A stretch of DNA of 64,000 nucleotides from contig CBFDEM010000060.1 in NCBI GenBank assembly GCA_965603825.1, positions 588,987 through 652,986 of the forward strand, written 5' to 3'. Under the pieces are notes generated by a model, which made no database searches, was not told the DNA's origin, and saw only the letters and a list, made by a program, of their open reading frames with translations. The translations under genes were made by a program, and so were the position numbers. Shown here piece after piece: positions 1-59,619 of this stretch (its first letter is position 1; each line of letters opens with the position of its first letter). The stretch comes from Blepharisma stoltei ATCC 30299. Taxonomy: Eukaryota; Protista; Ciliophora.

Positions 1-3000
1 TTTGGAAAGTTTTATTTTGAGAGGAGAAGAAGTCACTGTGATGGTAAGCAAAGAATATCCAGATACAGATGGCTCTGTCGAACTTTGGCTAGTTGCAGTT
101 GCATTGAATTGGTATGAGTATCCACTTGGAAGCATATTTTTGTTGATAACAAGCTTGTTCTGCTGCTTGGATGCAGAAAGGATTGCTGAGGAATCAATTG
201 TAGGAGCCCCTGCTAAGGCAACATAGCTCCATTTATAAGTCACTGAAGAGACATCTCCACAGAATGTAGCAACTGAAGCCTTGTAAGTTCTTGAGTCTGA
301 AGCTTTAATTGTATCAGTTGATCCTAAATCAAATACAACTTGAAGTGAAGGAGCTGCCTTAATTGCTGTAGTCATTGATGCAGAGTTTGTGCCGCCAAAG
401 GCGTTTGTTACTTTAAGAGTAATCACTAGTGTAGAGTCAACGTTGCTTGTAAATAGAAGTTTTGTGATTGCTAAAGATGCTGTAGTTTGCTTAGCAATAT
501 AATTAGTCAGATCTGAGTTCTGTGGAGTACTGGTGGCTGACCAAGTGTATGCCGTAGGGTTATTCAAGTTTCCTGTTGACTTTGAACCTGAGTACTGAAG
601 AGCTGTGTTTCCACAATCTAAAGAATAGCTTGCTGGTCCGGAAATGACAGCATTAGGAGTAGGATCGGCTGTTTGCCTTACAGTAATATATAGCGGAGTA
701 TAATTTAAGCTGCAAGTTCCTTCCGTTTTAACAATATTTGTTCCCAACAAATATAGTTTTTCAACTCTAATAGTAAAGCCTTTTCCTAGTTGAATTCTCA
801 GCTTATGGGATCCATCCCATGAGCAACTGGCTCCAGTTCCTAGTTTGCTAATGCTTTGCCAATCAATGGTATTTGAGCATGCTGCACTAACTGTAGTATC
901 AACACCTACACTGAAAGTAACTGTAATGGTAGAGAAATATTCATCGAAATAGGCGTCAGTCACATCTGATAATACGAAATAATTCTTGCAAGCTATACAT
1001 TTATTGCTGACTAAGGTATATCCACCATTACAAACACACGACTGTGAATTTGAGTCATAGCTTGAATCTGCAGTGCAAGAACACTTGCTCTTTACTAATT
1101 CTGCATTAGTTACACAAGCTGTGCAAGAGTCTCCATCATCTTCGCTGCATGTAGTACATACTTGGTTGCAGGTAGCTACACATTTAGTATCTTTTTGGTA
1201 AAATCCACTAACACAGCTGCAAGTGCCATCTGAATTTGCTGAAGCATGCTTTATGCAAGTATTGCAAGTATCTACTGATTTAGTGCAGATGGAACAATTG
1301 ATCTTACAAGCCTGACATGTATTTCCAGATTTTCCATATCCATTACTACAGCTGCATAAGTTAGTATTATCAACTGCTGCATTATCCACACAAGAGCTGC
1401 AGGACCAATTAGACGAGCATTTCTTACAAAGTCCTGGGCAGGCTGTGCATACTGCATTTAAAGAGTAATAATAGTCATTGCATGTACAAACACTTGTATC
1501 TAAATCAAAGCTTGCATTTTCGTCATTACAAGTACAAACTCCATCAGTGAGAGTCATATGGCTTGCGTCTAAACATTCTGTGCAATTGGTAGCTTCTTCT
1601 GAACATTCTTTGCAAGGAGCATCACAGGCTTCGCATGAATTTGTATCATTATAATAGAAGCTAGAATCGCATTGGTCACATGTAGATCCATCAACACACT
1701 CAGCGCAATTATCCATACACTTAGTGCAGTTTCCTGGATCATCATAATATCCTCTGACACAGACACAGTCATTAATGGTTGTATTAAACTCTGTATGATC
1801 ATCTAAACAATTATCACAAGAGCCATCAGTATCCAATGTATTGTAGACTCCACTGCATTTTGTACAATGAGTTTCAGAGTTGCACCATAAACAAGGTTCA
1901 ACACAAGGGGAAGTAGCTGTATTAGAGCTGAAATAGTAAGTATCATCAGCAGCACATACTTCTGTATCATTATCAAGTGAAGAATGAGTTGGGCAGTCAC
2001 AGTCAGGAATTCCAAGCATATGAGTTGTATCTATACATAAAGTGCAGATTGAGGCTGAGGCAGTATCACAAGTTGCACACTGTATATCGCATTCAGCACA
2101 GGTGGTATTAGAATCAAAGTAATAGCCGTCGTCAGGGATACATTCATCGGTATTAATATCAAGGGTAGAGTTGCCTGGACAGTCACAGTTAGGGATGGCT
2201 GACATGTGTGTTGTATCCACACATGAAGTGCAGGCAGAGGCTGACATTGTATCACATGTTTCACATTGTGAGTCGCATTCTGCGCAAGTTGTATCTGAGC
2301 TGAAGTAATATCCATCGTCTGGAATGCAATTATCAGTATTATTATCAAGTGTAGAATGCTGAGGGCAGTCACAGTTTGGCACTCCAAGCATATGTGTTGT
2401 ATCTAAGCAAGAGGTGCAGATGGAGCCTGAAGTGGTATCGCATGTAACGCATTGTAGGTCGCATTCAGCACATGTGGTATCTGTATTGAAGTAATATCCA
2501 TCATCTGGAACGCAATCTGATTCATTGAAAGTTGAGTTGCCAGGACATTCACAATCAGGCTCTCCAAGCATATGAGTTGTATCTGCACAAACTGTGCAGG
2601 AAGTTCCATTGGTAGTATCACATGTCTCACATTTAGAGTCGCAATCAGCACATGTTGTATTTGAATCGAAGTAGTATCCGTCATCTGGAACGCAATCTGA
2701 TTCATTAAAAGTTGAGTTGCCAGGACATTCGCAATCAGGCTCTCCAAGCATATGAGTTGTATCTGTACAAGCTGTGCAGGAAGTTCCATTGGTAGTATCA
2801 CATGTCTCACATTTAGAGTCGCATTCGGCAGTAACAGTATTTGTATCGAAGTAGTATCCGTCATCTGGAACGCAATCTGATTCATTGAAAGTTGAATTAC
2901 TCGGGCAAGCGCAGTCAGGCTCTCCTAGCATGTGCGTTGTATCTGTACAAGCTGTGCAGTAAGTTCCATTGTTAGTATCACATGTCTCACATTTAGAGTC

Positions 3001-4884
3001 GCATTCGGCAGTAGCAGTATTTGTATCGAAGTAGTATCCGTCATCTGGAACGCAATCTGATTCATTGAAAGTTGAGTTCCCAGGACAGTCACAATCAGGC
3101 TCTCCAAGCATATGAGTTGTATCTGCACAAGCTGTGCAGTAAGTTCCATTGGTAGTATCACATGTCTCACATTTAGAGTCGCATTCGGCAGTAGCAGTAT
3201 TTGTATCGAAGTAGTATCCGTCATCTGGAACGCAATCTGATTCATTGAAAGTTGAATTGCCAGGACATTCACAATTAGGTTCTCCAAGCATATGAGTTGT
3301 ATCCGCACAAGCTGTGCAGTAAGTTCCATTGGTAGTATCACATGTCTCACATTTAGAGTCGCAATCAGCACATGTGGTATCTGTATTGAAGTAATATCCG
3401 TCATCTGGAACGCAATCTGATTCATTGAAAGTTGAGTTCCCAGGACAGTCACAATCAGGCTCTCCAAGCATATGAGTTGTATCTGTACAAGCTGTGCAGT
3501 AAGTTCCATTGGTAGTATCACATGTCTCGCATTTAGAGTCGCATTCGGCAGTAGCAGTATTTGTATCGAAGTAGTATCCGTCATCTGGAACGCAATCTGA
3601 TTCATTAAAAGTTGAGTTCCCAGGACATTCGCAATCAGGCTCTCCAAGCATGTGCGTTGTATCTGCACAAGCTGTGCAGTAAGTTCCATTGGTAGTATCA
3701 CATGTCTCACATTTAGAGTCGCAATCAGCACATGTAGTATTTGTATCGAAGTAGTATCCGTCATCTGGAACGCAATCTGATTCATTAAAAGTTGAGTTCC
3801 CAGGACATTCGCAATCAGGCTCTCCAAGCATGTGCGTTGTATCTGTACAAGCTGTGCAGTAAGTTCCATTGGTAGTATCACATGTCTCACATTTAGAGTC
3901 GCAATCAGCACATGTGGTATCTGTATTGAAGTAATATCCGTCATCTGGAACGCAATCTGATTCATTGAAAGTTGAGTTACCAGGACAGTCACAATCAGGC
4001 TCTCCAAGCATATGAGTTGTATCTGTACAAGCTGTGCAGTAAGTTCCATTGTTAGTATCACATGTCTCGCATTTAGAGCCGCATTCGGCAGTAGCAGTAT
4101 TTGTATCGAAGTAGTATCCGTCATCTGGAACGCAATCTGATTCATTAAAAGTTGAGTTCCCAGGACATTCGCAATCAGGCTCCCCAAGCATGTGCGCTAT
4201 ATCTGTACAAGCTGTGCAGTAAGTTCCATTGGTAGTATCACATGTCTCACATTTAGAATCGCATTCGGCAGTAACAGTATTTGTATCGAAGTAGTATCCG
4301 TCATCTGGAACGCAATCTGATTCATTGAAAGTTGAGTTACCAGGACATTCGCAGTCTGGAGCCACTGACATATGTATTTCGTCTATGCATACAGTACAAT
4401 CAGATGAATTGGTATCGCAAGTACTGCATTTATTATCACAACAGCTTGCACCGCTACGGTGAATTGTAAATTCATTTTCACACGTAACACAAGTTTCATT
4501 ATCGATGCTATTAACTACTGCACAATGGTCAAAAGTCGAATTTGTGCATCCACCTGCATCATCAGGTATTGCATCTGAATAAAGGCAAGTATCACATGTT
4601 GTACCATCTGCACAAGTTACACACTCATTTGCACCGTTAGTGCAAGTAGCTGTTAAATATCTTTCGTTTTCCCACCATGATCCCTCTTCAGGTGTATTTT
4701 GGTCATTTTCTGGAAGGGTATGACTATTTTTCATAAGTTGATTGACTGCCTCAAAATCGTCGATAAGCAGTTTCGAGTTAATTTCAGAGCTTCTAAGGCT
4801 ATTTTTAGTAATTGGATTGAGTTCTTTCGCTGTAGTTGCTTCAAGGATCAAGAGCAAAAGATAAGCTATTCTAGCCGCAGGCAT
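1..4884 (-). CDS. Gene A (3' end outside window): Cys-rich repeat surface protein, paralog of gene B (polycystin-1-like)
   Basis: ATG at 4884 reads MPAARIAYLLLLILEATTAKELNP (signal peptide), followed by about 13 60-aa Cys-rich repeats. Positions 1-2030 are near-identical to 13834-15860 of gene B. The ORF track omits it, apparently because the frame runs off the window edge. Confidence 0.92.
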   Translation of the reverse strand, partial: MPAARIAYLLLLILEATTAKELNPITKNSLRSSEINSKLLIDDFEAVNQLMKNSHTLPENDQNTPEEGSWWENERYLTATCTNGANECVTCADGTTCDTCLYSDAIPDDAGGCTNSTFDHCAVVNSIDNETCVTCENEFTIHRSGASCCDNKCSTCDTNSSDCTVCIDEIHMSVAPDCECPGNSTFNESDCVPDDGYYFDTNTVTAECDSKCETCDTTNGTYCTACTDIAHMLGEPDCECPGNSTFNESDCVPDDGYYFDTNTATAECGSKCETCDTNNGTYCTACTDTTHMLGEPDCDCPGNSTFNESDCVPDDGYYFNTDTTCADCDSKCETCDTTNGTYCTACTDTTHMLGEPDCECPGNSTFNESDCVPDDGYYFDTNTTCADCDSKCETCDTTNGTYCTACADTTHMLGEPDCECPGNSTFNESDCVPDDGYYFDTNTATAECDSKCETCDTTNGTYCTACTDTTHMLGEPDCDCPGNSTFNESDCVPDDGYYFNTDTTCADCDSKCETCDTTNGTYCTACADTTHMLGEPNCECPGNSTFNESDCVPDDGYYFDTNTATAECDSKCETCDTTNGTYCTACADTTHMLGEPDCDCPGNSTFNESDCVPDDGYYFDTNTATAECDSKCETCDTNNGTYCTACTDTTHMLGEPDCACPSNSTFNESDCVPDDGYYFDTNTVTAECDSKCETCDTTNGTSCTACTDTTHMLGEPDCECPGNSTFNESDCVPDDGYYFDSNTTCADCDSKCETCDTTNGTSCTVCADTTHMLGEPDCECPGNSTFNESDCVPDDGYYFNTDTTCAECDLQCVTCDTTSGSICTSCLDTTHMLGVPNCDCPQHSTLDNNTDNCIPDDGYYFSSDTTCAECDSQCETCDTMSASACTSCVDTTHMSAIPNCDCPGNSTLDINTDECIPDDGYYFDSNTTCAECDIQCATCDTASASICTLCIDTTHMLGIPDCDCPTHSSLDNDTEVCAADDTYYFSSNTATSPCVEPCLWCNSETHCTKCSGVYNTLDTDGSCDNCLDDHTEFNTTINDCVCVRGYYDDPGNCTKCMDNCAECVDGSTCDQCDSSFYYNDTNSCEACDAPCKECSEEATNCTECLDASHMTLTDGVCTCNDENASFDLDTSVCTCNDYYYSLNAVCTACPGLCKKCSSNWSCSSCVDNAAVDNTNLCSCSNGYGKSGNTCQACKINCSICTKSVDTCNTCIKHASANSDGTCSCVSGFYQKDTKCVATCNQVCTTCSEDDGDSCTACVTNAELVKSKCSCTADSSYDSNSQSCVCNGGYTLVSNKCIACKNYFVLSDVTDAYFDEYFSTITVTFSVGVDTTVSAACSNTIDWQSISKLGTGASCSWDGSHKLRIQLGKGFTIRVEKLYLLGTNIVKTEGTCSLNYTPLYITVRQTADPTPNAVISGPASYSLDCGNTALQYSGSKSTGNLNNPTAYTWSATSTPQNSDLTNYIAKQTTASLAITKLLFTSNVDSTLVITLKVTNAFGGTNSASMTTAIKAAPSLQVVFDLGSTDTIKASDSRTYKASVATFCGDVSSVTYKWSYVALAGAPTIDSSAILSASKQQNKLVINKNMLPSGYSYQFNATATSQSSTEPSVSGYSLLTITVTSSPLKIKLSK
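2050..4370 (-). repeat. 180-bp tandem array in gene A (11 homogeneous plus about 2 diverged units)
   Basis: tcatctggaacgcaatctga recurs every 180 nt from 2501 to 4301. Unit is approximately CECPGNSTFNESDCVPDDGYYFDTNTATAECDSKCETCDTTNGTYCTACTDTTHMLGEPD. Confidence 0.95.
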
Positions 4885-5349
4885 ATTTTATTAGGTTAAT
4901 AAAATGGATCAAATTAAATCAACATATAAGAATGATTACTTATGAAAGAAATATATAGAATTTTAATAATCTAGATGATATTTCTCAGTTTTACCAATAT
5001 TTCGAATAAAGAAACTAGCTGAGCTTATCTTAAAAATTCTTTAGTTTTTGGAAATCATTATTTATAGCAGCCTAATTAAATAATGATATTTAATGCTGCC
5101 ACAAGAGCCTAAAAAATGATTTAAGGGAACTGAAATGTGAGTCTGTATTCAAATTAACTAACATTTTTATTTTATTGCAAGCTCCATAATATTTATTCAG
5201 CGGCAAAATGGTGTAATCTTCCTAAAATGGTTTATGAATAAAATTTTTAAAGAGATGAAGAATTAATTTTTTGATGTTCTAGTATCAAATTACCTTAAGT
5301 CATTCTAAAATGATAATTTTTATCTCTTGAACAATAAAAAATTTTATGA

Positions 5350-6435: not shown

Positions 6436-7859
6436 CATCCTAAGAAAGCTTTAAAATTATTAGGTTGCTATAATCTATAGGTTTTAAAGCTAATCTGGGT
6501 TAATAAAATTCTTAAAAATTCAGCCCATCAGTAAAAGGGATAACTTGAAAATATTTGGATTATTTTATGCATTTGCAATATAAAAATCTAAAAATAAATT
6601 TTATTTAGTTATTGCCCTGAGAGGAGTAGCTTTGCATTTTATAAGTATCTATTCGTTCGAAAGAACCTTCATAACTCATAATATTTAGAAGATTTGATAA
6701 AGATGATGAAGCAATTAAAGTAACTTGCCTAATATAAGAGCATGTGAAAACTTTGCAATTTTTTAAATTTAATATTAAATCAAGCTTTCATGCAGAAATT
6801 TCGACCATAATGGCTCATTCATATAATTCAAAATTCTAAATTTGATAAATATGGAATTCATGAGGGTTCAATTTAATATTAAAACTTTTATGAGAGTTTT
6901 CTTAATTATATACATTTCGATAATTCAAAGATTTCAATATTTCTATGAATTTAGTTACTTAAACTGCTATCATTTGAGAATTATTTTTCTCGCTTTAAAA
7001 AATTTGACATAAATTATTTTTTCGATACAAATCTAATTGCTAGCTTTTAATACTTATATCCACTTAAAAATTCTTATCATTTTCTATATTAAAACAAAAC
7101 TCCAGCCAATTTCTTAATGAATGTTTTACATAATCAGAAATCAAGATAGGCTCTAAAGCTCACTAGAATTTAAATCTGTTTTCTTATGCTTATCAAGGAA
7201 ATAAACCAAAAAACCTTTATAGATTTCATTTCTTGCAAAGAAGAATAAGATATTGACTTTAAAATATAAAATATTGAAATATTTGCAAAGTATTATGAAG
7301 ACATTGAAAATCTTGACCATTTTATCTTAATTTCAGATTAAATAGAAATTTTGGCCTTAATAAAGAATACATAACAAAATTTTGGGTTTTCAGATGCAGA
7401 TCTGTGCTATTGAATTCTTGCCGCAATATCAAGAGAAATAAGCAAAAGATTGAGGAAAAAGAAATATAGAGTCATATTGAAATAAAATACCTTTTTTATT
7501 CAAGATTTAAAAATATCTCAGTTGTAAATTAAGGATGCTTAGAGTGATTCATTGTTGACAGCACAGTAATGAAATAGTCTGCTGGAATTGGAAAGAAACT
7601 AAAAAAGTGTCTTTATATGAGAATATTGAATTTTCTTATTATTGAAGAAGCCTATAGAGATTTTAATAGAAATTTTGGTTCTATAATTTAGCTTTTTTGT
7701 AAATATTGGATAGCCTATAACTTGTCTTATTTTCAAGGGAATATTATCAAGAAAATCCAACTTTTTATTCTCACATGTTAATAACTAATATTTTCCTATC
7801 TTAAAATTATTACAAGGAAGAAAACTGGAATATCTAAGGAAGAAGAGTTTGTAATACTC

Positions 7860-9200: not shown

Positions 9201-10139
9201 AAAATAAGTTGTTTTTTATATCATAAGCATAATTAGTGTTATATTTCACCAGAAGAAAACATTTTTGCCGAGAAATTCGAGCTTGATTATTATTGAAGAG
9301 AACATTATTGCTTCATATAAACATATAAAAAAAATGCTTAAATAAATTCTTCTTGAGTTGTGGAATGAGAAAATATTAGATCTAGAGAATTATATATTTA
9401 GCGGTTATCCTCATGATAGAGATAAATACTGGACTAAGAGGAAGTGATTATATAATGATTTTTATGGCTTACATAGGGGGCTATTTAGTGAAGAAATTTT
9501 ATAACTTCTTAAAGAAACTCTTTACTACCGTTTTCAAAAGTAGAATTAAGATCCCCCAAATAATATTTTATTTAGAAAGGTCAAGAATTTCTCATTTGTC
9601 TGTGAAATAAAGATTCTTCTAAGATAGAAAAAGTCATATGAGATCTCATTTGCCAAAGTAGGTTTAACTATAATGACTAAAAATTGGTAATAATTGGATA
9701 ATATAAGAATCAATTTTCTGTGCAGTTTTATGGAAATAGAGTAAGAATGCATGGGGATAATAAGAAATTAAATAGATTTAAGCATGTTAGCTTGTTATGC
9801 ATATCAACTTTACTAATCTATGCAATAAATCCCAGCATACAAAATTTTAAAATGGCAATCATTTATAAGAATAATAAAGAATTAATAGATAATATGCTGA
9901 ATTTCGCATTATTGTCTTACTTAATCATGAATCATAAATTTGGCTTTACTATAGCCATGCGATTTCAATTTATTGCAAATTAATTTTAAATTTTCCTATC
10001 TTCGTTTATCTAAAGAGCTTATATATTGAACTAAAAAGTTCCTGCTCTCTTCTGCATAAGAATTCTATGTTTATTATAAATTGGGGCATAAGAAACTCTA
10101 AAAATGTTGGCAGTTAAATACATAAATATTTTTATAAAA

Positions 10140-10480
10140 TTATTAGAAGTATTTAATCATTAGCTTTTTTTACAAATTAAACTTGTAGTAGCTTCATTTT
10201 GCAAAGAATCCGCACATTTATTGTATTACTAATAAACTTGTGAAGAATTTTGATCGCTAATAATCGATTTTCCTATTTTTTCCACACATTTCATTACCTG
10301 TTTCGCTTTTATAACTGATCCCCATTCAACCAAATACAGACTTTTTGTATTTATCAAAATTTTTCTTTTCCACTCTGCAAAAGAAAAAGAATTCTTGATA
10401 AATTGTCGTTTTTCAATAGAATAGCGCAAAATATTGGGATTTCAGCACCCTGGTATCAAAATATTTTCATTAAATACAAC
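10140..10480 (-). pseudogene. 3' fragment of the U-box/Kelch gene carried along in the duplication
   Basis: LRYSIEKRQF...KILINTKSLYLVE aligns with LRYSIENDDF...KILINTERLYLIE (24591-24950). Frameshifted and 5'-truncated. Confidence 0.85.
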
Positions 10481-11028
10481 GCAATTTTTTCCCACTCACT
10501 ACAAGGGGAATTTTGATGACCTCGTTTCTTTTTCCCATGCAGCATTGAGAGTTAGAAGTATACGCTTTTTGGATGCAATCGTCTGAATTACTTAATTAGA
10601 GTGTAACACCTCTTTAAAATTTGCCAAATAATTTATGAATAAAAGATACTGATTTGGAGAAAGTCTTTCATAGGGTATTTATTTATGAAAAGCATTTCAA
10701 TTCGAAGATTCAATAATTTAAACTATAAATGCTTGCTTTTTTTATAAACCTGAATCGTTTAAATGCAGCTTTGACCTCTAGATACATTAAATAGCTAAAA
10801 TAAGCTTTTCAAGACAGTTTTTTTATAAAATAATAAAGTTGTACATGAAGAATTATTGTTTGCATTTTCAAATTTAAAAAGTTATTACGACTAAAGTAAT
10901 CTTACAAGCTACCTAAAATCTAATAAATTAGCTAGTTAATTTTTAATAAAGATTAATTTAGCATTTAGAGCTTTATTAAAAAGACTTAAATGATTAGATT
11001 AAAATGCAATTTTATAAAGATTGATTAC

Positions 11029-14000
11029 TTAAATAGTATCTTTCCCTTTTCTTGTTCCTGCTCTCCTTGACTTGATCAGAAGAGCAATGTAGCGAATGAG
11101 CATATAGAAAATCTGAACAATAAAGATTTCCATAAGAATTCCCCATAAGAAGCTTTCAGCCCAGTAGCCACTCCAATTGTGACAGAAGTCAACGTTAAGT
11201 ATCACAATCCCAATGACTGATCCAATAAGAACTGCAATGCCTAGTAATAAAGCCAAAATATTCACTACTCTTCTTCCTTTCTCCATGCAAGATATCAATG
11301 CACATTCTAAGTGTACTCCTATAAGGACTGCGAGGACTGTATATCCGAAATAGTTTCCTTCATAATTGTCAAATATTGATTGAGTTGACATTTCTCTGCC
11401 TTTATCAGTGTCTTCAAATCCTGAGAACAAGCAGCCCTCTACTAATAACTCGAAAATAATAACGGCAAGTAAAATGAATGCTCTTCTCCATCTTGGCAAA
11501 TCTTTTCTATAATAAACCAGCCCAAATGTCAAATGACCTTCCAAAAGCATACGGAAATTCCCTTTAGCTCTATATTCATTATATAGTTCTTTTGGATAAA
11601 AGTCAACTTCTGGGCCTTTTTTAGTATGTCCTGAAGGGCCTAAATTATTTACCTCTCTTTCTGTATTTTCTGCAGCAAGTTGAGCTTTTTCAGGGTCACT
11701 TTTCACTTCTTCAGTCTGCACTAAATCCATTTTCACCTTCGTAAATGGCTCAGATTGCTCTGAAAGGGCTTCGACCTTCAAAGGCTCCACGTCTTCTTTG
11801 TCCATTTCATCAACCTTCAAAGGCTCTACAGGATTATTTGCAAGTTCAGGAACTGGAGTCACTTTTTTATCTTCTTTTTCTGAGGCTTTATTGTGGGATT
11901 TATCCATAAAGACTGTGATTATCATAAGGACGAATCCAATGAAAAATGAGACTATCATTATGATAGTTGGGGCTAAATTATCCCCGCATTCCGGAGTATA
12001 AGTAGGAGGAATGTAAGGGACAAAATCTGTTTCTGAGAGCTTAAATAAGGAGAAATGGGTAAGTGAAACTGTAATTGTATCAACTCCTTGGCTAGTAATG
12101 ACGCAACCATTTACGTCCCAAGTTGAAGTTGTAGTGTCATAATACACACAAGAAAGGCCCCTAGTCGCATTTTTATAATAAGGAATAGTTACTGTGACTG
12201 GATATCTGTCATCATTGAAGGATTGATATTGCTCATCTGTAGCAGTATATTGATAATCTTGATATCTACCGCTAGTTGTGTAGCTTACAGAGAACCAAGG
12301 TGCATAGCCGTCAGTAATATTATAAGTATTAGCTTTGAAGTTTGTGACTTCAGTCTCATCAATTGGGATTTTATTAGGGAATGTTACATCAATAAACCCA
12401 AAGGTCTGAGAAGTTTTACTGATTGAATCAGGGAAATTTCTGACTTTTCCAAATTGGATAGAGGAAGTTGAATCTGAAGCTGGAAGTGAGCTCTGGCCTG
12501 GAAGGTCATCAACTGTAATATAAGTCATAAAAGTAGTTAAGAAATTATCTGCTGCCAGCAAATAAGTCTCAAATGGCATTGTTGCGTCAGCATGTTTGCT
12601 GCCGAAATCTAAGTATCCGTTAGAAAGCGATACGATGATTTGCAAAATGCTACTTGCGTCAGTATTAATAGCAATTGAGTTGGCTGTAACTAAGTTATTG
12701 AGCCAAGTCATGAAATTTTCATAAAGAGTGACTGTCATTGAATCAGTTTGGCTTGATAAAGCCAAAACTGCAGCCGCGAAACTCTTAAATAGTGAGACTG
12801 ATACTGAATCTTGGCTTGCTGCATATGATTGCAAGTCACTCCACATCTGTGAGAAAAGAGTATTATCTATCGTTGCAGAGGAAGCAATCAATGAGATTTC
12901 GCTTGGAATATTGTCAGGGTCAAGAGTTGCAGAGGCATACATAGCAGCGTAGTCTGTGTCTTCTAGTTTTCTCTTTAGAGAATCGACTGTGATTTTGCTT
13001 TGATAAGTTGAGCAGCTTAAAAGCTGATCACATGCCTTGATTTTAATTGTATTACTGTTAGGGAATAAGCCAGTTGATAAGCTGCTGTCTTGAGTGGCTC
13101 CAAGGACATATTCCACACTATTCCAGACATCATCATAAGAATAAGTTAAAGGATAGTCTTGTCCATCTTGGTCATAACACCCAGCAATTGAAATTACAAA
13201 CGTTGTTTGCAAAGCAGTTCCACTTGTTGGCTGTATGTCTACAGATCCATCACAGGTAGCCCCACTGTTTATATTTACTATAATTGATGATGATAAAGAG
13301 TTTCCTGAAGTCTCAGTGATTGTAAAGCTGAATTTATAAGAACTACCTTGGATAAAGGTATTTGGTGGGATAGAAATTGTTGGCAAGTTATCAGGAGAAA
13401 TCTTTATTGCAGAACTATCACAAACCCATTTAATTTTAGAGCCAGATGATATAGTAGCTGTAGGAGATAAGGTATAAGAAGATCCTGCTGAGATTTTGGC
13501 TGAAGAATAAGGAATTTCTATTGAAGAAGAGGAGGCAACTGTTGCAGCTGAGACTTGCACAGTGACTGTGGCCGATGCATTTCTACTTCCTGCACTTATT
13601 AATAGGGTTATATCGTAGCTTGCTCCTGGTATCATTTTTCCTGAAGGAATTGAGAGGCTTGAGGTGGTAGCAGAAGAGACAAGGTCTTTATTATCAGTTC
13701 CAAGACAAGAAGTTGCATTCACTGTATATAAACAGCTCCATTGGTAACTTAAAAGAGTAGAAGAGCTATCTGGATCTGAAGAACGATCTCCATTAATAGA
13801 AAAGCCGTTCTTGGATGCCACAGTGCAGCTGGATTTGGAAAGTTTTATTTTGAGAGGAGATGAAGTCACTGTGATGGTAAGCAAAGAATATCCGGATACA
13901 GATGACTCTGTAGAACTTTGGCTAGTTGCAGTTGCATTGAATTGGTATGAGTATCCACTTGGAAGCATATTTTTGTTGATAACAAGCTTGTTTTGCTGCT

Positions 14001-23600: not shown

Positions 23601-24590
23601 AATCAGTTCAGTTGTATATTGAGGATGCTCATAGTGATTTATTATTGACAGCACGATATTGAATTAGTCTGCTGGGATTGAAAAGAAATTAAAGCAAGTA
23701 TCTTTATATGAGAGTACTGAGTTTTCTTATTATTGAAGAAGCTTGTAAATATTTTAATAAGAAATTTTCGTCCAATATTTAAGCTTTTGGTAAATATTGA
23801 ATAGCCTATAGTTTATCTTACTTTAGTAGGAATATTCTCAAAAAATCCAACTTTTTATTATCTCAAATATTAAAAACTTAATAGCATAATACGGAAATTT
23901 AAAATTAATTTACAATAAATTATAAATAATACCACTATAGCAAAGCCAAATTTAATATTCATGGCTAAATAAGACAATAATGCAAAATTCAGCATGCTAT
24001 CTATTAATTCTTTATTTATTCTTTAAAATTATTGCCATTTTAAAATTCTGTATACTGGGATTTATTGCATAAATTAGTAAAGATGACACGCAGAACTATG
24101 CTGGCATTCTTAAATTTAGTTAATCTATCATTATTCTCATGCATTCTTGCTCTATTTCAATAAATCTGCGCAGAGTATATATTCTTAATTGTCCAATTAT
24201 TAAAATTAGTATTCATTACAAATTTTTAGTCATTATATTTAAAGCGGCAAATGAGAACTTGTATGGCTTTTTCTATCTTAGCAGCATCTTTATTTACAGA
24301 TGAATGAGAAATTCTTGACCTTTCTAAAAAAGAATTTACTTGGGGGATCTTAATTCTTATTTTGAAAATTGCAGTCAAATAGTTTCTTTTAGCTAGAAGA
24401 TTTCTGATATTCCAGTTTTCTCCCATTTGTAATAATTTTTAAGATAGGAACCCATAATATAGTAGCATCTATTTTTATCTAAAAAGCTTATATATTCGAC
24501 TAGAAAATTCTTGTTCTCTTCAGCGTAAGAATTCATGTTTATTATGTAAAAATGTTGGCAGTTAAATATGTGTATATTTTTAAAAAATTA

Positions 24591-26318: not shown

Positions 26319-26399
26319 TTCAATAAAAATTTAAGAGATATTTTCAAATAATCAATAAAACATAAATATGAAGTATAAGAATCTTGATGACTTGCTTTC

Positions 26400-27500: not shown

Positions 27501-29264
27501 AAAAGGATAAATTCTAAGAGATGTGATGATTTTTGGCAGTGCAACATAAAATCGTTTTAGAATTATAGGCCCCTTTTTGAATTAAGGCTGAATATTTTAG
27601 GAATATAAGTTAATAAATTTATAAAATTATCTTAGAAGAATGATTATTTTCGATCTAATAAATAAAATTCTAAAACTTTTACAATCCAAATACATTTTGG
27701 TAGATGTCGATATGGAAGTTAAGCTTCAAAATGAATAATATTTTCTTTGCCTATTATATTTTTGTGCCTTCTTAGGTTTTTTAAAGCATTTCTTTAGCTT
27801 CTCAAAGTTTCTGGATATTGCGATAAATGCTCTAAATCTTAACTTGAAATGTCATAAAGTTATTTATTAGAAGTAGCATACATCATGTGACCTTTCTTCA
27901 GATTTAAATAAGTATAAATTATGCTGAGGAAGAAGTCGGGCAAACTATAATCAAAAAGGTCTCGATCTTAGTGCTGTTGCCTCTTCTAAGGGAACGTTGA
28001 ATAGCTTGATTGTTGTATTTTTAGTCAAAGTTTCTCCAGCAAAACAATCGTTAAAATTTGTTAAATTGTTTATAAAACTTAATAGAATCTAAAAAAGATA
28101 CTTTTAATATAGACAGCAATAAAAATTTATAATTTATCAGTTGATAAATAATAATTCTATAAATTTTAAATAATTTTATGTATTAATTCTAAAGTAAATA
28201 TATTTCTTACACAATAATTGCGGCTTAGCTGAATAGAATACATGCTGATGATCATTAAAAATATATCTCAAAGTAGGGGAATTGTCACAATCGTTGCATT
28301 TGCTCATAAAATTTAGTTTAGAATATAGTAAATTCTCTATTTTTAATTAAATTATTATATAAATAACTTTTTATAATTAAATCATGCTCTTCAGTTAAAA
28401 ATTCAATTAATAACAGAATTTTAATTTGAAAACTGAATTTAATTTTTATTTTTAAGTTCTAATTTAAAAAATAAATCAATTCAGCGTGAAGACTGTATAA
28501 AATAATAAGGCATTTTAGACGGGGCGATGACTAGTGGGTTGCCACTTATGGCCGAATTCTTATTTGAATTTTAATTTCACGAACGGAAACTCCATAAACT
28601 GCAAAGCTTGATTCTCAATATAGCACTTGCTTGAACATTCCTCATCCGATTTAGGTTAAAAAACCAATGGTAATCTTACACTCTTCATTTCCTGAAATTA
28701 TATAATCAAATTTCTAAAACTCTCCACAAACTCTCACTCAATGCATGCGCCTCAAATCCTCCACAAAGCACCAAATCCGCTGTTTTTTCTCTTATTTTTG
28801 GCACAAAGTGCTAAAAATGAAATTAAAATTAATTAAATATCTCTTTATAGAATGCATATTTTATCATTTTAATCGTATTAAATGCCAATAAAATTTGTTA
28901 GTTAAGTATAGAGATGCTATGGTGCACTAAAAATCATGCTATTTAAATAATTCTAGACTTTTAAAGAGAAAAGCCAAAACAGGAAGAAGGTATCAGACTT
29001 ATAGTAAATGTGTCTCATGACTCAGAATTCTGTAAAAGAAAACTTATCTGGGAAATTTACATAATCCTTTTATTAAATAAAAGATATAGCTCCTACACTG
29101 CGTGATTACTAATATAATTTTGTGTAATTGAATATTTCAATAATTGTAACAAATAATGATAAAAATAGTTAACCTTAATAATTTATTTTATCTAAATTAG
29201 GAAAATTTAAAGATCCAAAACCCTTTTATTTGCTTAAAGGCTATATTTATATTAATTTATATTA

Positions 29265-29811
29265 AAATAATGAGCTGAAATGAATAATATTTTTTAAAGC
29301 GCTTTAAGTTTAAGAATACGATGCATATTTACATTCTCTGCTTCGAAAAAAATCATAACAGCTTAAGATAGAACCAAAATCCTATAATTTTCATTTTCTG
29401 TGGAAATTTTACAAACAAAATCGCCATTATATGAGTTCTATTCTTATCCGATTAAATTAGCTAACCTGAGTATTTGAATAAACATAGCAGCCCATAGCCT
29501 AGACAACGGTTTTTAATATTTTGATATGCTTCTGTGGTTATCAGCACTTAATAGAATGCAAAAGCTATAATTATAATTACTAAAATTGGCTCATTAAACT
29601 TTTAGATTTATAAATAAACCAGAAATTAATAAAGCTTTATTTGTTAATTAATATTAAAATTGAAAACTTTACAAAGAAGGAGATCAATTAAAATATAATT
29701 AATTAAAAGCAGAGATTAACTAAATAAATAAAGCCATTAATTTAGCAATGCTTTATTGCAAAATCTACTTAAATAGCATAATAAGTTTACTTTATTTTAT
29801 AATACCATAAA
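29265..29811 (+). repeat. About 550-bp non-coding segment duplicated at 60266-60829
   Basis: Near-identical from aaaataatgagctgaaa to aataccataaa. Confidence 0.93.
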
Positions 29812-30028
29812 TAATTCAAATTTTAATATAAATTAACTATTTGCGACATAATTTAGGTACAGAGCTCAACAAGTTTAAATTGATTTTTATTTTTATGGTA
29901 GTCTTTTGGTTATTTCTGAACATTTAAAAAAATAGCAGTTTCTTAATTCGAAAATCTGGAATATATATAGGGATTATTAAAGTCAATATTCAAATTATTT
30001 TGTATTTATTATTCAGTTTATTTATTTA

Positions 30029-33000
30029 ATGGAGTTTTATTTGCTATTCCTATCAATATCTACCCTTGCATCAGTTGAGCTTCTCATCTTTTATGGAGAA
30101 ATGACTCCAGTGTCCCTTATTTCATATTTTCAGGCCAATTTAGCAGGAATGATAGGAAATCCCAATATTTTCGAGATTGTTTTTGTACTAGCAAATAGCC
30201 AAACAAATTTTATATCATCACTTAAAGGTGATATTCAAATTGCAATTGATGCTACATTTGATATAACTTTAAGCCATCGCTTATTGACTGCTACAGAAGA
30301 ACAAGGAATTATAAATTTGTATTTAGACTCAAATTTGCTAACTAACGGTGAGCTGCAGTATTATGCTCATGTGCCTTTGCAAAGCCAATTGGCTATTATG
30401 CAGCAATTCCTAGATTATTTAGGATGAAACGAAATTACAATTATTGGCAGCAATTCACAAGAATCCTTAGCGCTTTCTGATAAATTTGTGGAAAATACTG
30501 AAAATAGGGTAAAGCTTAAACTTTTGTTAACAGAATCTTCTAATATTGGTAGAATGAATGACATTGCCGGCAAGATTTTCAAGCTAAAAGGTTTGCAAAT
30601 CTTTATGGTGCTTTGCGAAGGAAATTATATTAGCAATATCATAATTTCTTTTGCTAATAAAAAATTATATAAAGCTGGACTAGGAATTTTAATATGAAGT
30701 CAAGGCATATGAGGAGGGTCTGAAAATGGACTTTTATATTTAGTAGAGCAAGGCCTTGAAGCTGCTACATCTTATGAGCAATACGAAGCTCTTTCAATTA
30801 AATTCTTTACAAACTCAATATTGGAGTACATAGAAAATCTTTCAAGCAATGAGCTTCCTAGAATCACTAATGACTCCTTAAAGCAATTTATACAATCCAA
30901 TTGGCCAAACCATGGGAAACCCCAAAGCTATTCCATAATAAATATTGTCAATTCTACAAAAAAAATAGTCGGAACCGCCTCGAACGCTTTAATCAGCATT
31001 TCATCAGATCCTATATACCCAGGAAACACCACTAATAAGCCAACAGCTTCTAAAGCAACCCTTTATATGTCCTTAACTACTTCAGGCAAAGAGCCTGATG
31101 GCAGCTTCAATTCTTATCAGCCAGTCCAAGCCCAAGGCAATTTTTTCGCCCGAGACTGAATAAATAACAGCTCTTTAATCCTTGAAAATTTCCATATCAA
31201 ATTTGTAGAAAATAGTTGTGGGACGATGAGTTTTATAAAAAATATTGATGCTGCATGCTATTCGCCGCTAAAAGAAAAGTTAGGCGTGGTTTTTCTCACT
31301 TCGGATTATGTAGCAAGCGTTGTAGGTATAATTATGCTGTTTAGAGAATGAAATATTTCGCTTCCCCATATAGCTCCAGGCCCAAGTAGTCCGCTTCTTT
31401 CCAATAAAACTAATTATCCAGAATTCATGAGGGTAGCTCCTAATGGAAATTATAATGCCGTGGTTATTCTTAGACTTTGCCAAATTTTTGCCTGAAAAAA
31501 TGTAAATGTTCTATATGCAAATTCAAGCTCAAATATCGCTATGTACCAAACCTTTGCAAGCGAGGCCCAAAAAGGAGGAATCACAATTGCAAATGGTGAA
31601 AATGAGCGAATTCTCCCAGCAAACTATGACAGAACCCAATTTTCTAATTATAAACATATTTTCCAAGCAATTAAGAACACCAATGTCAAAATTTTTATTT
31701 CATTTCAAACGGCCAATTCTAATTATCAGTCAATTGAAGGCCTTTATGATATAGGGCTAAGAAAGGGAAACCTTGTCATAATTTTACCTTCCAAAACTGG
31801 CGGACAAGCTATAATCCAAAACTACGCCCAAGCCTATCTTCCAAAGCTACTAGAACTTCTAACTGGCTCTATAAGTGTCGGCACAATTGAATATATAGGC
31901 GAATTTGGCTTAAAAATAAAAAAAGCTATGACTGACTACTGAGGAAATTCCCCAAATTTCAAAGCCACGCATTTTGATCAAACTTTACTTGCTGCATATG
32001 GCTTAGATTTTACTATTAATAAAGGTGATGATTTTGAAAATGCTACAATTTTAGCCAAAAATGCAAGGCTCCAAAGGTTCACAGGTGCTTCTGGATCTAT
32101 CGCAATCGATTCTACATCAAATGACAGGAGTTTTATGATTTTGGGTATAAATAATTTTTATACAACAAATTCAACTGGGATTTATAATGAAAGCGTGGCG
32201 GGATATTATATTCCAACTTCAAGCATCCCTATACAGCTTAGTACCAATATTATATGGCCTGGGCCTTCTTATACGCTTCCCCACGACTCCGTAGTGATAG
32301 ATTCTGAATGCGGCTTTGATAAATCAAAAACTAGCAAGTCTGTTAAAGGAATTGCGGTTTTTACGACCATTTGTGGGGCAGTGTCTTTATTAGCTGTTTT
32401 AATTGCATTTTATACGTGGAAAAGGAAACTGGTTATGCATTATCCTAAGCTTGTGGAGGCAAGAGAGATACAGTTTGCGGACTCAGTAATTATGATGACA
32501 TTGCTGGTGGAAACTTTTCAGTATATTAATATAGGGCCAAAGGTGAAGAATGATCCCGCTACAAGGTATTTGAGCAGCTTAATTAATATTGATATTACAA
32601 TGCTTAAAAGCAGCGCATATTGGATTGGACTTGATATTGTGCTTGGAATAGTATGCTTTTGGCTTCTTATGTGTTTATTGGCGGTGTCAAAAAATCGGGC
32701 TGTAATTCAGAACGTATTTATCCTTAGATGGCTTTATGAAGTAAAAAACTACTTAATGCCCTTATTAGGAAATATGCTTTTTATCCCAATAATAAATATT
32801 CTACTTACTGTCCCTAAGTGCTCAAAGTCAATCGGAGATGAGCTTGATGAAAGCTATATGGATATCAACTGCAAAGAATTTTGCTGAAAAGAAACTCATC
32901 TAACCTATGCAATTGTTTGCGCCTTCTCACTTGCCCTGTACATTCCTATATCGGTCATATATAGGCCTCTTTGAACTAATCTTCAAGGCGACTACAATCA

Positions 33001-33586
33001 AAATATCCGACCCCAGCCAGGATATTTAATTGTAAAAAGCGCAGCCCAAATCATTTTTGTAACTCTAAACAAAATAATTTCATTGCACGACTCCATAACC
33101 CAAGGTTTTGCCTATTTATGTTTTTTAATCATATTTACAGTCTATATAATCAAGCATCCGCCCTTTAATTATGAGCGATTAAGTATGTGGCATGTTGTTG
33201 CTTTATTTTGTGTCTCATGATCAATATTATTAGCAAGTCTTTCTCTAATAGTAGATCAATATGACTTAGGATTTATGATAGCAAAATTAGCAGGATGGGG
33301 TATTATGATTGTGTATGGTCTATTTTTGCATACCAAAAAATACCCAGCACTATTAATAAGACAGCCTCCACAAAATATTTCTGTACTATTTAGGTTTATG
33401 TTGACGTCAAGTGTAAGAGCTGATGAAATTGAGAAAAAAAATTTAAGGTTTGAGAATGGAGGTATTAAGCTAGAAGAGCACGCTATTGATGCACTGTCTT
33501 TTGATAAAATTGAAATTGCTGAAAATATTGAAAATGACATGACATCTAAAAGAGATATTATTGACGAAGAAGAAGGAATTAACTAA
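30029..33586 (+). CDS. Receptor-like protein, 1185 aa: signal peptide, two tandem ANF-receptor/Venus-flytrap-like modules, about 8-9 TM segments
   Basis: Six track ORFs share one frame and are joined by 10 TGA codons; the gene ends TAA. VFT signatures SPLLSNKTNYPEFMRVAP, FA(W)KNVNVLY and RFTGASGSIAIDSTSNDR; an earlier LDYLG(W)NEITII marks a degenerate first module. Confidence 0.88.
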
Positions 33587-33779
33587 TAAAATTAAAATAA
33601 TTGAATGATCTAATAATTAATAAATGATTGCTTTATATAAATTTAATTTTTTGAATTGAATCTCTTTGTTAGAGAATCAATCTATAATAAATTTCAACGA
33701 TTTTAAGTTGTTTCAACAACGTAAAAATCAAGTCAGACTTCAGAAAAGCTTGCTCACTATATGAGAACAAAACTTTGCA

Positions 33780-34190
33780 TCTGATATATTATTAGTCTAA
33801 GCTTATCATGATTTAATCAGCTCTTATCATCAAATCTCATCGTTTATCTCGTTCAAAGGGGTGATGATATCGATACTGATTTAATCATTTACGACACTGA
33901 AACTAAAACTAAAAAAAGCAATAGTCTTTGGATTATCCTAACCAATTAGCAATGAATGCCTGCCTCACTCAACTCCAATTGGTGAATTTTTCTGTTTGGG
34001 TAATCTTTATCCAGATACTAGCAGAGGATTGATAATTCGCAAAGATCGAGTCTACCCTCTGGAATGGAATATTTCAAGATCATTTATTAGCTATATATTT
34101 TTATAGAAGTATTTACTGTTTTGGAGGATATGATGATAGAAAAATTTTCACCTGCTACTTAGAAGTATTTTATATTGGATAACAGAAGAG
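33780..34190 (+). pseudogene. Kelch-domain pseudogene fragment related to the U-box/Kelch gene
   Basis: LIIYDTETK...ACLTQL..GEFFCLGN...YFYRSIYCFGGY resembles LIVYDTENE...TCIAQLPDGELFCFGN...YFNRNIYCFGGS. Frameshifted. Confidence 0.7.
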
Positions 34191-34429
34191 CCTGGCTTCG
34201 CAGAAATTATAATCATCGAAATAATAATTCCCATTTTCCGCATAAAAAATAGTAGTGCCTGATATTATTGTGCTGGCTCTTTGCTTGTATCTGTGCTTGG
34301 CTTACAGTATCTGTATAAATTATTTGATAAAGATCGTCAGCCAGAGCAAAAACTAATGGGGATTATTTATTTGGCCTAATGCGATATTGATATTGATATA
34401 GTCTTCAGCAATAGATATATCGAAAATGA

Positions 34430-34650
34430 GTACATCAAGAAAAACCTTGCAAATGTCAAAGAGTTTCTCTATTGAGGTCAATTTGTGTTTATAAGGTATT
34501 GAAGAGGCTACAGTTGGTCTAGTCTGTAAAATCTGTCCAAAAGGCTATTATAATATATATTTAAATAAATCTAAGTGTTAGGATTGTACAAAATATGCAA
34601 TTTGTTATGGAAATTTCTTAATAGTTCCAAATCGGGGTATTGAAGAAATA
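34430..34650 (+). pseudogene. Fragment of a Cys-rich membrane-protein ectodomain
   Basis: CKICPKGYYNIYLNKSKC*DCTKYAICYGNFLIVPNRG with an in-frame TAG. Confidence 0.5.
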
Positions 34651-34719
34651 TTGAGTATTTTTGTCATTTATCAATAAGACGATAAATTATATTAGGCTAC
34701 TTAGCTTATTGATTTAATA

Positions 34720-37584
34720 TTATACGAAATTAAACCGTAGATCAACTTTTATTGGCAAATCGCAATCACTTAGCGTGGTTTGAATATAATAGTGCATACT
34801 ATCAATCGATTCCAAGGTGCTAGAAGAGGTATTATATGTTTTATTATCTCCATACTTGATAATAAAATTGTTTTTCTGAAGAATCCTTCCTAAATTTGCT
34901 GCAAAATTAATCATTATTTTTCCTTCGTGAAAATCAAGCTCAAACCCAACTGAAGTCTTGTTGCAGGTTCGTTCTAAATGATTTCCACATAAATAAGTTG
35001 ATTGATCGCAGGCTGAATTATTATTACATGTGCAATTTACAGAATATCCATAATCATGCAAGTAAAATTGGTTTTTGCATGATGTGCAATTTATTGATGA
35101 AGTGCATTCTGTGCAACTTTCTGGACATGCTAAATAGCTATTACCAGTACAGATTTGATTATTATTATAAAAGCCCTGAGGGCATTCGCAATTTTCTGGG
35201 TTTGTATGGCTCATGATAAAAGGATTCTGACAACTAATGCATTGCATATTATTACAGAATAAACAGTTTTGACCACATGGAGCACAGTTTGTTCCATTTC
35301 AATAATAAGATGTACTACAAAATTTGCAAATATCAGCACTTTGGCAAACTTCGCAATTGGGTATTGTGCATTGAAGGCAATAATCTCCAGACAAGTAAAA
35401 CCCATCTAAGCATGCTCTGCAGTTGGTAGAGCCTTTTTGGCATTCAGAACATGGTGAGCTGCAGCTCAATGTGCAAGTTGAGCCTGATGTAGTACTACAA
35501 GTAGCACATTGAGGCTCACACTCAGCACAAGAGGTATTCGAATCAAAGAAATATCCATCATCAGGTATACAAATGCCATTAAAAAGTCCTGAATGTTCTG
35601 GACATTCACAGTCAGTAATTCCAAGCATATGTGTTTTATCTATACAAATAGTGCAGAAAGTCCCATCGGTAATATCGCATGTCTCACATTTAGGGTCGCA
35701 TTCAGCACATGTGGTAGCATCACTAAAGTAATATCCGTTATCTGGAACACAAACTGATCCTGTGAGAGTTGAGTGATCAGGGCATTCGCAGTCTGGAGCC
35801 GCTGACATATGAGTTGTATCTGCACAAGCTGTGCAGACAGTTCCATCGCTAGTGTCACATGTATCACATTTAGGGTCGCATTCAGCACATGTGGTAGCAT
35901 CACTAAAATAATATCCGTTATCTGGAACACAATCTGATCCTGTTAGAGTTGAGTGCTCAGGACATTCGCAGTCTGGAGCCGCTGACGTATGAGTTGTATC
36001 CGTGCAAGCTGTGCAAGAAGTTCCATCGCTAGTGTCACATGTATCACATTTAGGATCGCATTCAGCACATGTGGTAGCATCACTAAAGTAATATCCGTTA
36101 TCTGGAACACAAACTGATCCTGTGAGAGCTGAGTGATCAGGACATTCGCAGTCTGGAGCCGCTGACGTATGAGTTGTATCTGTGCAAGCTGTGCAAGAAG
36201 TTCCATCGCTAGTGTCACATGTATCACATTTAGGGTCGCATTCAGCACATGTGGTAGCATCACTAAAGTAATATCCGTTATCTGGAACACAAACTGATCC
36301 TGTGAGAGTTGAGTGCTCAGGACATTCGCAGTCTGGAGCCGCTGACATATGAGTTGTATCTGTACAAGCTGTGCAGACAGTTCCATCGCTAGTGTCACAT
36401 GTATCACATTTAGGGTCACATTCAGCACATGTGGTAGCATCACTAAAGTAATATCCGTCATCTGGAACACAAACTGATCCTGTGAGAGTTGAGTGATCAG
36501 GACATTCACAGTCTGGAGCCGCTGACGTATGAGTTGTATCTGTGCAAGCTGTGCAAACAGTTCCATCGCTAGTGTCACATGTATCACATTTAGGGTCGCA
36601 TTCAGCACATGTGGTAGCATCACTAAAGTAATATCCGGTATCTGGAACACAAACTGATCCTGTGAGAGTTGAGTGATCAGGGCATTCGCAGTCTGGAGCC
36701 GCTGACGTATGAGTTGTATCTGTGCAAGCTGTGCAGACAGTTCCATCGCTAGTGTCACATGTATCACATTTAGGGTCGCATTCAGCACATGTAGTAGCAT
36801 CACTAAAGTAATATCCGTCATCTGGAACACAAACTGATCCTGTGAGAGTTGAGTGATCAGGGCATTCGCAGTCTGGAGCCGCTGACGTATGAGTTGTATC
36901 TGTGCAAGCTGTGCAAGAAGTTCCATCGCTAGTGTCACATGTATCACATTTAGGGTCGCATTCAGCACAAGTGGTAGCATCACTAAAGTAATATCCGTTA
37001 TCTGGAACACAATCTGATCCTGTGAGAGTTGAGTGCTCAGGGCATTCGCAGTCAGGAGCTGCTGACATATGTGTTCCGTCTATGCATGCAGTGCAATCCG
37101 ATGAACTGGTACCGCAAGTACTGCATTTATCATCACAACAGCTTGCACCGCTACCGTGAACTGTAAATCCATCAATGCACGCAACACAAGTATCACCATC
37201 ACCACTAGCAACCATACTGCAATGCTCAATAGTCGAAGCTGTGCATCCACCTGCATCATCAGGTATGTCAGTAGCTGAATTAGTGCAAGTTTCGCACGTT
37301 GTTGCATCTTTGCAAGTTTGGCATCCACTTGCACCACCAGTGCAAGCAGCTGTTAAATATCTTTCGTTTTCCCACCAGGATCCCTCTTCAGTCGTATTTT
37401 GGTCTTTTTCTGGACCAGTCTCATTATTTTTGACAAGTTGATTGACTGCCCCAGAATCGTCGATAAGCAGTTTTGAGTGAATTTCAGAGCTTCTAAGGCT
37501 AGTTCTGGCAAATGGGTTGAGTTCTTCCGCTGTAGTTGCTCCAAGGATCAGGAGCAAAAAATAAGCTATTCCACCTGTAGGCAT
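34720..37584 (-). CDS. Gene C: 954-aa Cys-rich protein with a gene-B-type N-terminus and 8 repeats but an unrelated C-terminus; no TM segment, probably secreted
   Basis: ORF 35299-37584 reads through one TGA (STSYY-W-NGTNCAPCGQNC) in frame into ORF 34720-35247 and ends TAA. Confidence 0.9.
35630..37070 (-). repeat. 180-bp tandem array in gene C (8 units, B-type)
   Basis: tctggaacac recurs every 180 nt from 35741 to 37001; units are nearly identical to those of gene B. Confidence 0.95.
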
Positions 37585-59500: not shown

Positions 59501-59619
59501 ACAATACTATATTCAGACTTGAGCTGCCAGCTTATACATCTTCAGAAATCATGAAAGAGAAGATTATACTTGCGATTGCCCAAAATAACAAGTTTGATTC
59601 TTTAGACATTAATATTTAA
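47467..59619 (+). CDS. Giant 4050-aa HERC/HECTD4-like protein (SPRY domains, ESxHxY CUB-like modules, C-terminal HECT-like domain lacking the catalytic Cys)
   Basis: Eight track ORFs share one frame and are joined by 7 TGA codons; the gene ends TAA. SPRY-like motifs GEKIGFLLDMDE, GDEITMLIDMD and NDVIGSYIDFD. HECT motifs PLLIPSQN...GRDN(W)IINP, LGKFFGSGIRT, IEIFW and LELPAYTSSEIMKEKIILAI. Confidence 0.92.

Follow-up and report, generated by a model that had tools for sequence, protein, structure and literature searches.

Non-allelic (ectopic) gene conversion and concerted evolution occur in tandem gene families, and conversion tracts are expected to stop at the edges of homology. In Trypanosoma brucei, segmental gene conversion among variant surface glycoprotein (VSG) genes alters the exposed part of the surface protein. 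In Tetrahymena, the MTA/MTB genes exist as incomplete germline gene pairs that are joined and deleted anew in each sexual generation (PMC3608545). Human PKD1 itself receives gene-conversion mutations (PMC3321182, Fig. 6 legend), and Tetrahymena has more than eight GAIN proteins (PMC3321182). Our literature searches turned up no account of mosaics among ciliate REJ Cys-rich proteins. Here we analyze a 64,000-nt window of Blepharisma stoltei ATCC 30299 (C60:588987-652986) that contains three paralogous genes, A, B and C. Gene B is a mosaic: its upstream region and its base are A-type, and it is C-type from the start codon to the end of its repeat array.

The B. stoltei macronuclear genome has 64 contigs, reads UGA as Trp, carries CCCTAACA telomeres and has introns of 15–16 nt (PMC9942806). 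The assembly that we compared spans 41.46 Mb in 64 contigs, and contig names such as C25, C48 and C60 refer to it. Long frames in the window are open only if TGA is sense (TGA = Trp). The three paralogs, with the N-termini and 60-aa units quoted in the preliminary description, lie on the minus strand; the ATG is at 4884 in A, at 20688 in B and at 37584 in C. In all three, a leader of ∼77 aa is followed by a Cys-rich N-terminal domain and then by an array of 60-aa units with 8–9 Cys in each; the arrays hold 13 (A), 24 (B) and 8.5 (C) units. The name 'three-gene surface-receptor cluster' given earlier does not fit all three. Only A and B have a base made of a REJ domain, a putative GPS motif and five predicted transmembrane helices (REJ-GPS-5TM); C stops at 34720 and has no membrane-length hydrophobic stretch.

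1–4884, minus strand: gene A, 5′ part; leader, 13 Cys-rich units, then REJ-GPS-5TM base. The entire gene (2563 aa) extends 2.8 kb left beyond the window, to C60:586179.
11029–20688, minus strand: gene B; 3219 aa in a single open frame, with C-type tip and array and A-type base.
34720–37584, minus strand: gene C; 954 codons, with signal-like N-terminus, 8.5 units, Cys-rich tail and terminal ∼80-aa domain.

Identities among the three genes change abruptly at the start codon. Over the 300 nt upstream, they were 87.2% for A-B, 77.4% for A-C and 74.1% for B-C. Over the first 178 codons, they were 97.8% for B-C, 82.8% for A-B and 82.6% for A-C, and B and C remained ∼98% alike to the array end. After the array, A and B were 95.8% identical across 1610 codons. 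Informative sites of the A=B and B=C kinds stood at 58:15 upstream and 5:85 in coding sequence (Fisher p = 6e-24). A maximum chi-square test placed the break between –8 and +7 of the ATG, a result matched in 0 of 2000 permutations. Thirteen nucleotides across the ATG are identical in A, B and C; directly upstream of it, a 10-nt indel and 11 informative sites separate B from C within 32 nt. With pseudogene D (described below) as outgroup, upstream sites supported AB|CD over BC|AD by 20 to 3, and the coding part supported BC|AD over AB|CD by 29 to 0. The topology thus differs between segments. The segments concerned are:

4885–5298, minus strand: A upstream region; 87% to B upstream over 300 nt.
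20689–21115, minus strand: B upstream region; A-type in comparison with A and C.
37585–37880, minus strand: C upstream region; homologous but old, 74–77% to B and A, groups with D.
20682–20696, minus strand: 5′ end of the tract shared by B and C; A=B sites run up to –8, and B=C sites begin at +7.
2008–4359, minus strand: A repeat array; 13 units of 60–62 aa with 37 N-glycosylation sequons (N-X-S/T).
15841–20160, minus strand: B repeat array; 24 units of 180 nt, C-type, with zero N-glycosylation sequons.
16381–17100, minus strand: units B18–B21, collinear with C04–C07; 17 mismatches in 720 nt, versus 25–56 in other registers.
16156–16230, minus strand: A-like relic where units B22 and B23 meet; 87% to A08/A09, against 73% to B/C-type junctions.
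11029–15840, minus strand: B 3′ half; 95.8% to A, dS 0.083, patchy (0.016–0.145).
35684–37584, minus strand: part of C common to B; leader, N-terminal domain and units C01 to mid-C08.
35478–35683, minus strand: C's own old terminal units; closest to pseudogene D (77%).

The arrays agree with the site counts. All B units and C01–C08 form one 100/100 clade, interleaved, apart from the A units; C01–C03 fit B01–B03 best, though weakly. In C, the tract ends at about 35684, beyond which lie C's own old units, nearest to D, and C-B homology ends ∼200 nt past the tract. The proximal, distal and 3′ flanks of B are all A-type, and C likewise keeps its own old flanks. Because B has A-type DNA on both sides of its tip, two breakpoints are needed; a single unequal crossover is ruled out as the source of B, since B upstream would then be C-type. 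Both B and C carry the tract, a non-reciprocal outcome, and we found neither a displaced tip nor the B tip at another locus of the assembly. As a result of the mosaic, B carries a stalk free of N-glycan sites on an A-type anchor, in contrast to A. The preliminary description had noted that B resembles C from the ATG through the repeats, and A both upstream and after the array. These resemblances all held up when measured, and the site flip and the unit clade support its proposal of a tract, running roughly from the start codon to the end of the array, by which the distal ectodomain passed from one paralog to another.

The A-type flanks of B continue for several kb, at 81–87% in aligned blocks, so A and B derive from one old segmental duplication. 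Two further traces of it are:

6440–7790, strand not assigned: distal flank of A, duplicated beside B at 21927–23883; 81–83% in aligned blocks.
9508–10485, strand not assigned: relic of a U-box gene 3′ region on the A side; matches 23889–24955, rearranged, with one block inverted.

On the B side, a 579-codon frame at 24594–26330 (minus strand) has an N-terminal U-box (E 3e-20), a coiled coil and a Kelch-like-looking tail.

We infer that germline non-allelic gene conversion between C and B, most likely from C into B, together with A-B patches, produced this arrangement, and we put the probability of this reading at about 0.72. On this reading, a Cys-rich surface receptor of the REJ-GAIN/GPS-5TM type was duplicated in tandem to give A and B. 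Conversion would have copied ∼1.9 kb that begins at the start codon and reaches the eighth repeat. The tract would start in the shared 13 nt around the ATG, right next to an upstream stretch that matches poorly and is rich in indels, and would end where the C array departs from the shared unit type. As both ends fall at edges of B-C homology, no special signal would be needed. Unequal crossing-over within the B array would then have expanded the imported unit to 24 copies, with A-like relics left near the 3′ end, and separate conversion patches would keep the A and B bases alike. As a result, B displays the C-type, sequon-free stalk on an A-type anchor, while the tip encoded by C is nearly the same but unanchored.

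The tract is not young. Its collinear part has 40 B-C differences in 1788 nt (2.2%), giving a synonymous divergence (dS) of 0.052 (0.033–0.076) and a dN/dS of 0.28. Heterozygosity is 3e-5 in ATCC 30299 and 4.7e-3 in strain HT-IV (PMC9942806). A B-C dS of 0.05 is ∼10× the allelic diversity of HT-IV, and such a copy is far older than any somatic event in the lineage. Judged by this divergence, the B-C copy appears to be neither somatic nor recent. The germline version of C, which includes internal eliminated sequences (IESs), has no annotated IES in the C tract or at its ends, although this macronuclear (MAC)+IES assembly was scaffolded on the somatic assembly and would hide larger germline differences. 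The nearest ones are:

35204 (tail), 128 nt, and 37995 (upstream), 331 nt, strand not assigned: nearest germline IESs to the C tract, from the MAC+IES assembly.

The germline IESs upstream of C, at 37995, 38505, 39280 and 41744, have C-rich/G-rich inverted ends, like IESs of the Bogo type of miniature inverted-repeat transposable element (MITE).

Within the conversion explanation, the copy probably ran from C to B. The dS between A and the B/C tip was 0.26, or 0.32 with one unit added (95% interval 0.22–0.46). These values are nearer to the A-C upstream distance (0.27) than to the A-B distances (0.14 upstream, 0.14–0.22 in flanks, 0.08 in the base), which favors C to B. Branch proportions in the coding and upstream trees fit C to B (p = 0.47) and do not fit B to C (p = 0.01). 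The A-like relic at B22/B23 also favors C to B, as its 87% identity to A is at the level of A-B upstream DNA.

Several points weigh against a C-to-B conversion. The direction test sets non-coding against coding DNA, whose rates differ, and its outgroup, D, is a pseudogene. The dS interval for the N-terminal domain (0.16–0.38) overlaps the A-B flank distance. The A-like relic in the B array could be a later, small A-to-B patch. Given the pseudogene outgroup, the unlike rates and the possible later patch, no line on direction is decisive. As to mechanism, an RNA-templated event would likewise put the break no more than 15 nt from the ATG. The mosaic is described here from assembled sequence.

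Exchange at this locus does not appear to have been confined to B and C. One stretch of the A and B bases is probably a separate, younger conversion patch:

14963–15412 in B, about 1130–1579 in A, minus strand: 450-nt run identical in A and B; the longest run in 2000 shuffles was 278 (P < 0.0005).

This run argues that conversion is recurrent at the locus. The A-B base is patchy throughout, with dS of 0.016–0.145 per 200 codons. Left of the window, the cluster continues with two more members:

C60:564475-567014, partly inverted: pseudogene D, an A/B-type receptor relic with large internal deletions and an inverted 335-nt array piece.
C60:568384-583839, strand not assigned: gene E, a REJ-GPS-TM paralog of ∼5150 aa whose leader is related and whose Cys-rich stalk is different.

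The 3′ relics of D are 82–90% identical to A and B, and its 5′ part is at about 70%. Together with the patchy A-B base, this means that bases within the sub-cluster are homogenized and tips are not. The 'constant REJ-GPS-TM base' of the preliminary description therefore holds, nearly, for A, B and the relic D, but not more widely: among E and four C25 paralogs, identity at the 3′ end is only 64–81%. At the protein level, REJ domains outside the A/B/D group are 28–46% identical to that of B. A genome search for REJ gave 33 matches.

Domains of B were found by scanning its parts separately with Pfam; scans of whole B and whole C gave only one spurious repeat match. The B base contains:

12946–14112, minus strand: REJ domain (Pfam PF02010, E 5.9e-34).
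12049–12153, minus strand: GPS motif (PF01825, 17–19 bits against a cut-off of 22.5), with H-F-S at the cleavage position.
11095–11964, minus strand: five predicted membrane helices (aa 2909–3198).

The REJ domain of A is 97% identical to that of B. The GPS motif scores weakly, below the Pfam cut-off, and is located as expected, before the first membrane helix; the protein may be cleaved there. Pfam gave no match to a PLAT domain in B, and no PDB sequence matched the B base (query 11032–13998).

Gene C has a different architecture downstream of the tract:

34720–35477, minus strand: C tail, of the soluble family; 80–82% to contig C25 genes.
35130–35144 and about 35013–35027, minus strand: predicted 15-nt introns in the C tail (NCBI model).
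34723–34980, minus strand: ∼80-aa terminal domain; no Pfam match.

The gene is intact and annotated. Its spliced NCBI model, taken from the database, has 944 aa and two 15-nt introns, both in the tail. Domain scans and hydropathy revealed no REJ, GPS or membrane helix in C, and hydropathy alone showed neither a hydrophobic C-terminal stretch nor a glycosylphosphatidylinositol (GPI) signal. C is thus predicted to be secreted. Its first ∼650 residues are nearly the same as those of B, without an anchor, and the shared part of its array has zero N-X-S/T sequons. The tail had 32 matches in a genome search, and the ∼80-aa domain closes the frame in 12 of 12 relatives checked. That all 12 stop at the same place also rules out a continuation of C into a REJ base via a small intron. 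A C25 relative is not a pseudogene, as its in-frame stop sits where a 15-nt intron is predicted. A profile built from 11 copies of the C terminal domain had no match in A or E. A word search with the first 240 aa of C retrieved only C, with a length filter that excludes A, B and longer kin. By these features, C is an intact gene of soluble architecture, neither a silent cassette nor a third receptor. It is also an older paralog, with a 5′ half of the A/B lineage and a 3′ end of the soluble family.

Two features adjoin C. Right after its stop, 33689–34650 is a patchwork of gene fragments: two adjoining C53/C8-family pieces (89%), mutually inverted, and a C38/C36 gene piece (78%). Head-to-head with C, at about 40400–41345 (plus strand), lies a Cys-rich frame whose end is apparently like the ∼80-aa terminal domain of C. 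This frame is broken into short frames, perhaps by small introns, and tblastn with the C terminal domain did not retrieve it. A bacterial promoter scan of the locus, irrelevant to ciliate DNA, returned nothing.

Among other explanations, the one that survives best is a selected pair of receptor and soluble twin, in which recurrent conversion has been kept so that soluble C matches the B tip, as a decoy, shed coat or homotypic ligand. More generally, swapping of tips between REJ-anchored and soluble families would be a route to diversity. We regard this as possible but rather improbable. C is intact, dN/dS is 0.28 in the tract and 0.15 in the C tail, and a 285-nt identical run within the tract gives a hint of repeated events (P = 0.04). 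Both families are large, as the match counts above show. A soluble 958-aa gene on C48 has a leader in common with REJ genes (34%, E 1e-17), and both end caps therefore use one front-end kit. Yet B and C are a single case, and purifying selection on them requires no partnership. The wider proposal, that two large families have one leader/tip kit and two end caps and that recurrent conversion moves whole tips between them, is equally tentative. If it is true, tip exchange would yield matched pairs of receptor and soluble twin like B/C, and would toggle the stalk between glycosylated and bare.

An assembly artefact, with B a chimera joined or polished across its 4.3-kb array, is much less probable still. 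The 180-nt arrays of B and C are near-identical, and HiFi reads reach only ∼12 kb (PMC9942806). But the 5′ break is located in unique DNA, 530 nt ahead of the array. In that part, 12 of 537 nt distinguish B from C, and in the base B departs from A at ∼205 of 4843 nt; B has private units and one 3219-codon open frame, and its tip is at no other assembly locus. Moreover, two same-strand repeat copies on a linear contig should not be able to permute unique parts, which would leave only the unit count at risk. The count of 24 in B is accordingly given as assembled.

Alternatively, there was no conversion into B: C would be a partial duplication of the B 5′ half onto a soluble-type tail, and the A tip would have diverged fast. 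C is indeed chimeric in ancestry, with an A/B/D-type front and a C25-type tail, and dN/dS for the A-B tip is 0.7. Partial duplication would, however, bring along B upstream DNA and the B array end at the age of the tract. C upstream is instead homologous yet 26% diverged from B and groups with D, and the last C units are D-like. In C, the tract thus has old, homologous DNA on either side, which contradicts a plain duplication: the tract was exchanged between two existing genes, and this alternative is about as improbable as a faulty assembly.

Least likely of all is the cassette-like diversification system of the preliminary description, with B built in macronuclear development by programmed or somatic switching of the MTA/MTB or VSG type. 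It would suit the membrane base with its variable, Cys-rich tip, the abrupt break at the ATG and a locus near a contig end in a ciliate with genome editing. Against it, the strain is virtually homozygous and yet 2.2% of tract sites distinguish B from C (dS 0.052), C is a complete, soluble-type open frame with its own upstream region and conserved tail, the C tract and its ends lack an annotated IES (in an assembly that hides larger germline differences), the tract ends at homology edges and the base is not constant across the family. The nearness of a telomere had been offered in its favor. An 8-nt telomere repeat is present at the window end (61785–64000), but its weight as evidence for a cassette system is weak. 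Telomere addition occurs about every 130 kb in the B. stoltei macronucleus, and contig ends of this assembly are not defined chromosome ends (PMC9942806), so we give little weight to the distance of A, B and C from the telomere.

The window has other features. A ∼1190-aa gene at 29981–33583 (plus strand) is annotated with an ANF_receptor ligand-binding domain, and its germline version has five IESs. A giant E3 ligase is encoded at 47464–59619 (plus strand), in a 4051-codon frame (TGA = Trp) with SPRY (E 3e-14), C-terminal HECT (E 1e-44) and weak CUB matches; two tandem 229-nt AT-rich units (93%) lie at its 5′ end (47112–47570). A 560-nt stretch occurs twice, at 29254–29811 and 60256–60829, 95% identical and on the same strand.

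The mosaic is a clean, dated case of ciliate polycystin-like receptors gaining ectodomains by copying a neighbor's front half. The swap exchanged a stalk bearing 37 N-glycan sites for a stalk that lacks them. With its C-type tip, membrane-bound B has a tip near-identical to that of soluble C, and C may be a decoy or ligand of B. A and B form a natural chimera pair, with a 96% identical base and 37 sequons versus none in the stalk; B and C form a natural anchored/unanchored pair with the same tip. These pairs are convenient material for finding out what is sensed by the tip and whether cleavage occurs at the GPS. As the mechanism is ordinary, interest will lie mainly with workers on the REJ receptor family. 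The locus would matter much more if matched pairs of receptor and soluble protein proved common.

How does this locus compare with known systems? Like polycystin-1/PKDREJ-like GAIN proteins, A and B have a long ectodomain and a REJ domain, and a candidate GPS motif, below the Pfam cut-off, lies just before the first helix. Unlike polycystin-1, they have five helices rather than 11, no PLAT match and a Cys-rich 60-aa stalk. C has no REJ, GPS or helices. A and B thus seem to resemble truncated polycystin-1 receptors. Paramecium surface antigens resemble these proteins in their large size, periodic Cys residues and internal repeats, and in belonging to multigene families (PMC9788069). The classical ones, however, are GPI-anchored (PMC9788069), whereas A and B are multi-pass proteins with REJ/GPS and C is without a hydrophobic tail.

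As in Tetrahymena MTA/MTB, ciliate surface proteins here have a specific ectodomain and a shared membrane part, with recombination between paralogs (PMC3608545). But A, B and C are all complete and on the same strand, and the event is old. MTA/MTB is an analogy only, as we see no incomplete donors, no donor identity and no family-wide constant base. T. brucei VSG shares with B a segmental conversion that changes the exposed part of a surface protein; there is no sign here of a silent archive, a single expression site or frequent switching.

The closest match is with ordinary non-allelic conversion. B and C show a bounded tract with a topology switch, parental flanks on both sides and a donor that was kept. 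The tract ends at homology edges, and the array is homogenized, with divergent terminal units. B and C differ from the usual case in that the tract spans the entire leader, tip and stalk, and in that the C-terminal architectures of the partners differ, one a membrane receptor and the other soluble. Ordinary non-allelic gene conversion between paralogs fits every feature tested, and the soluble partner is its sole twist.

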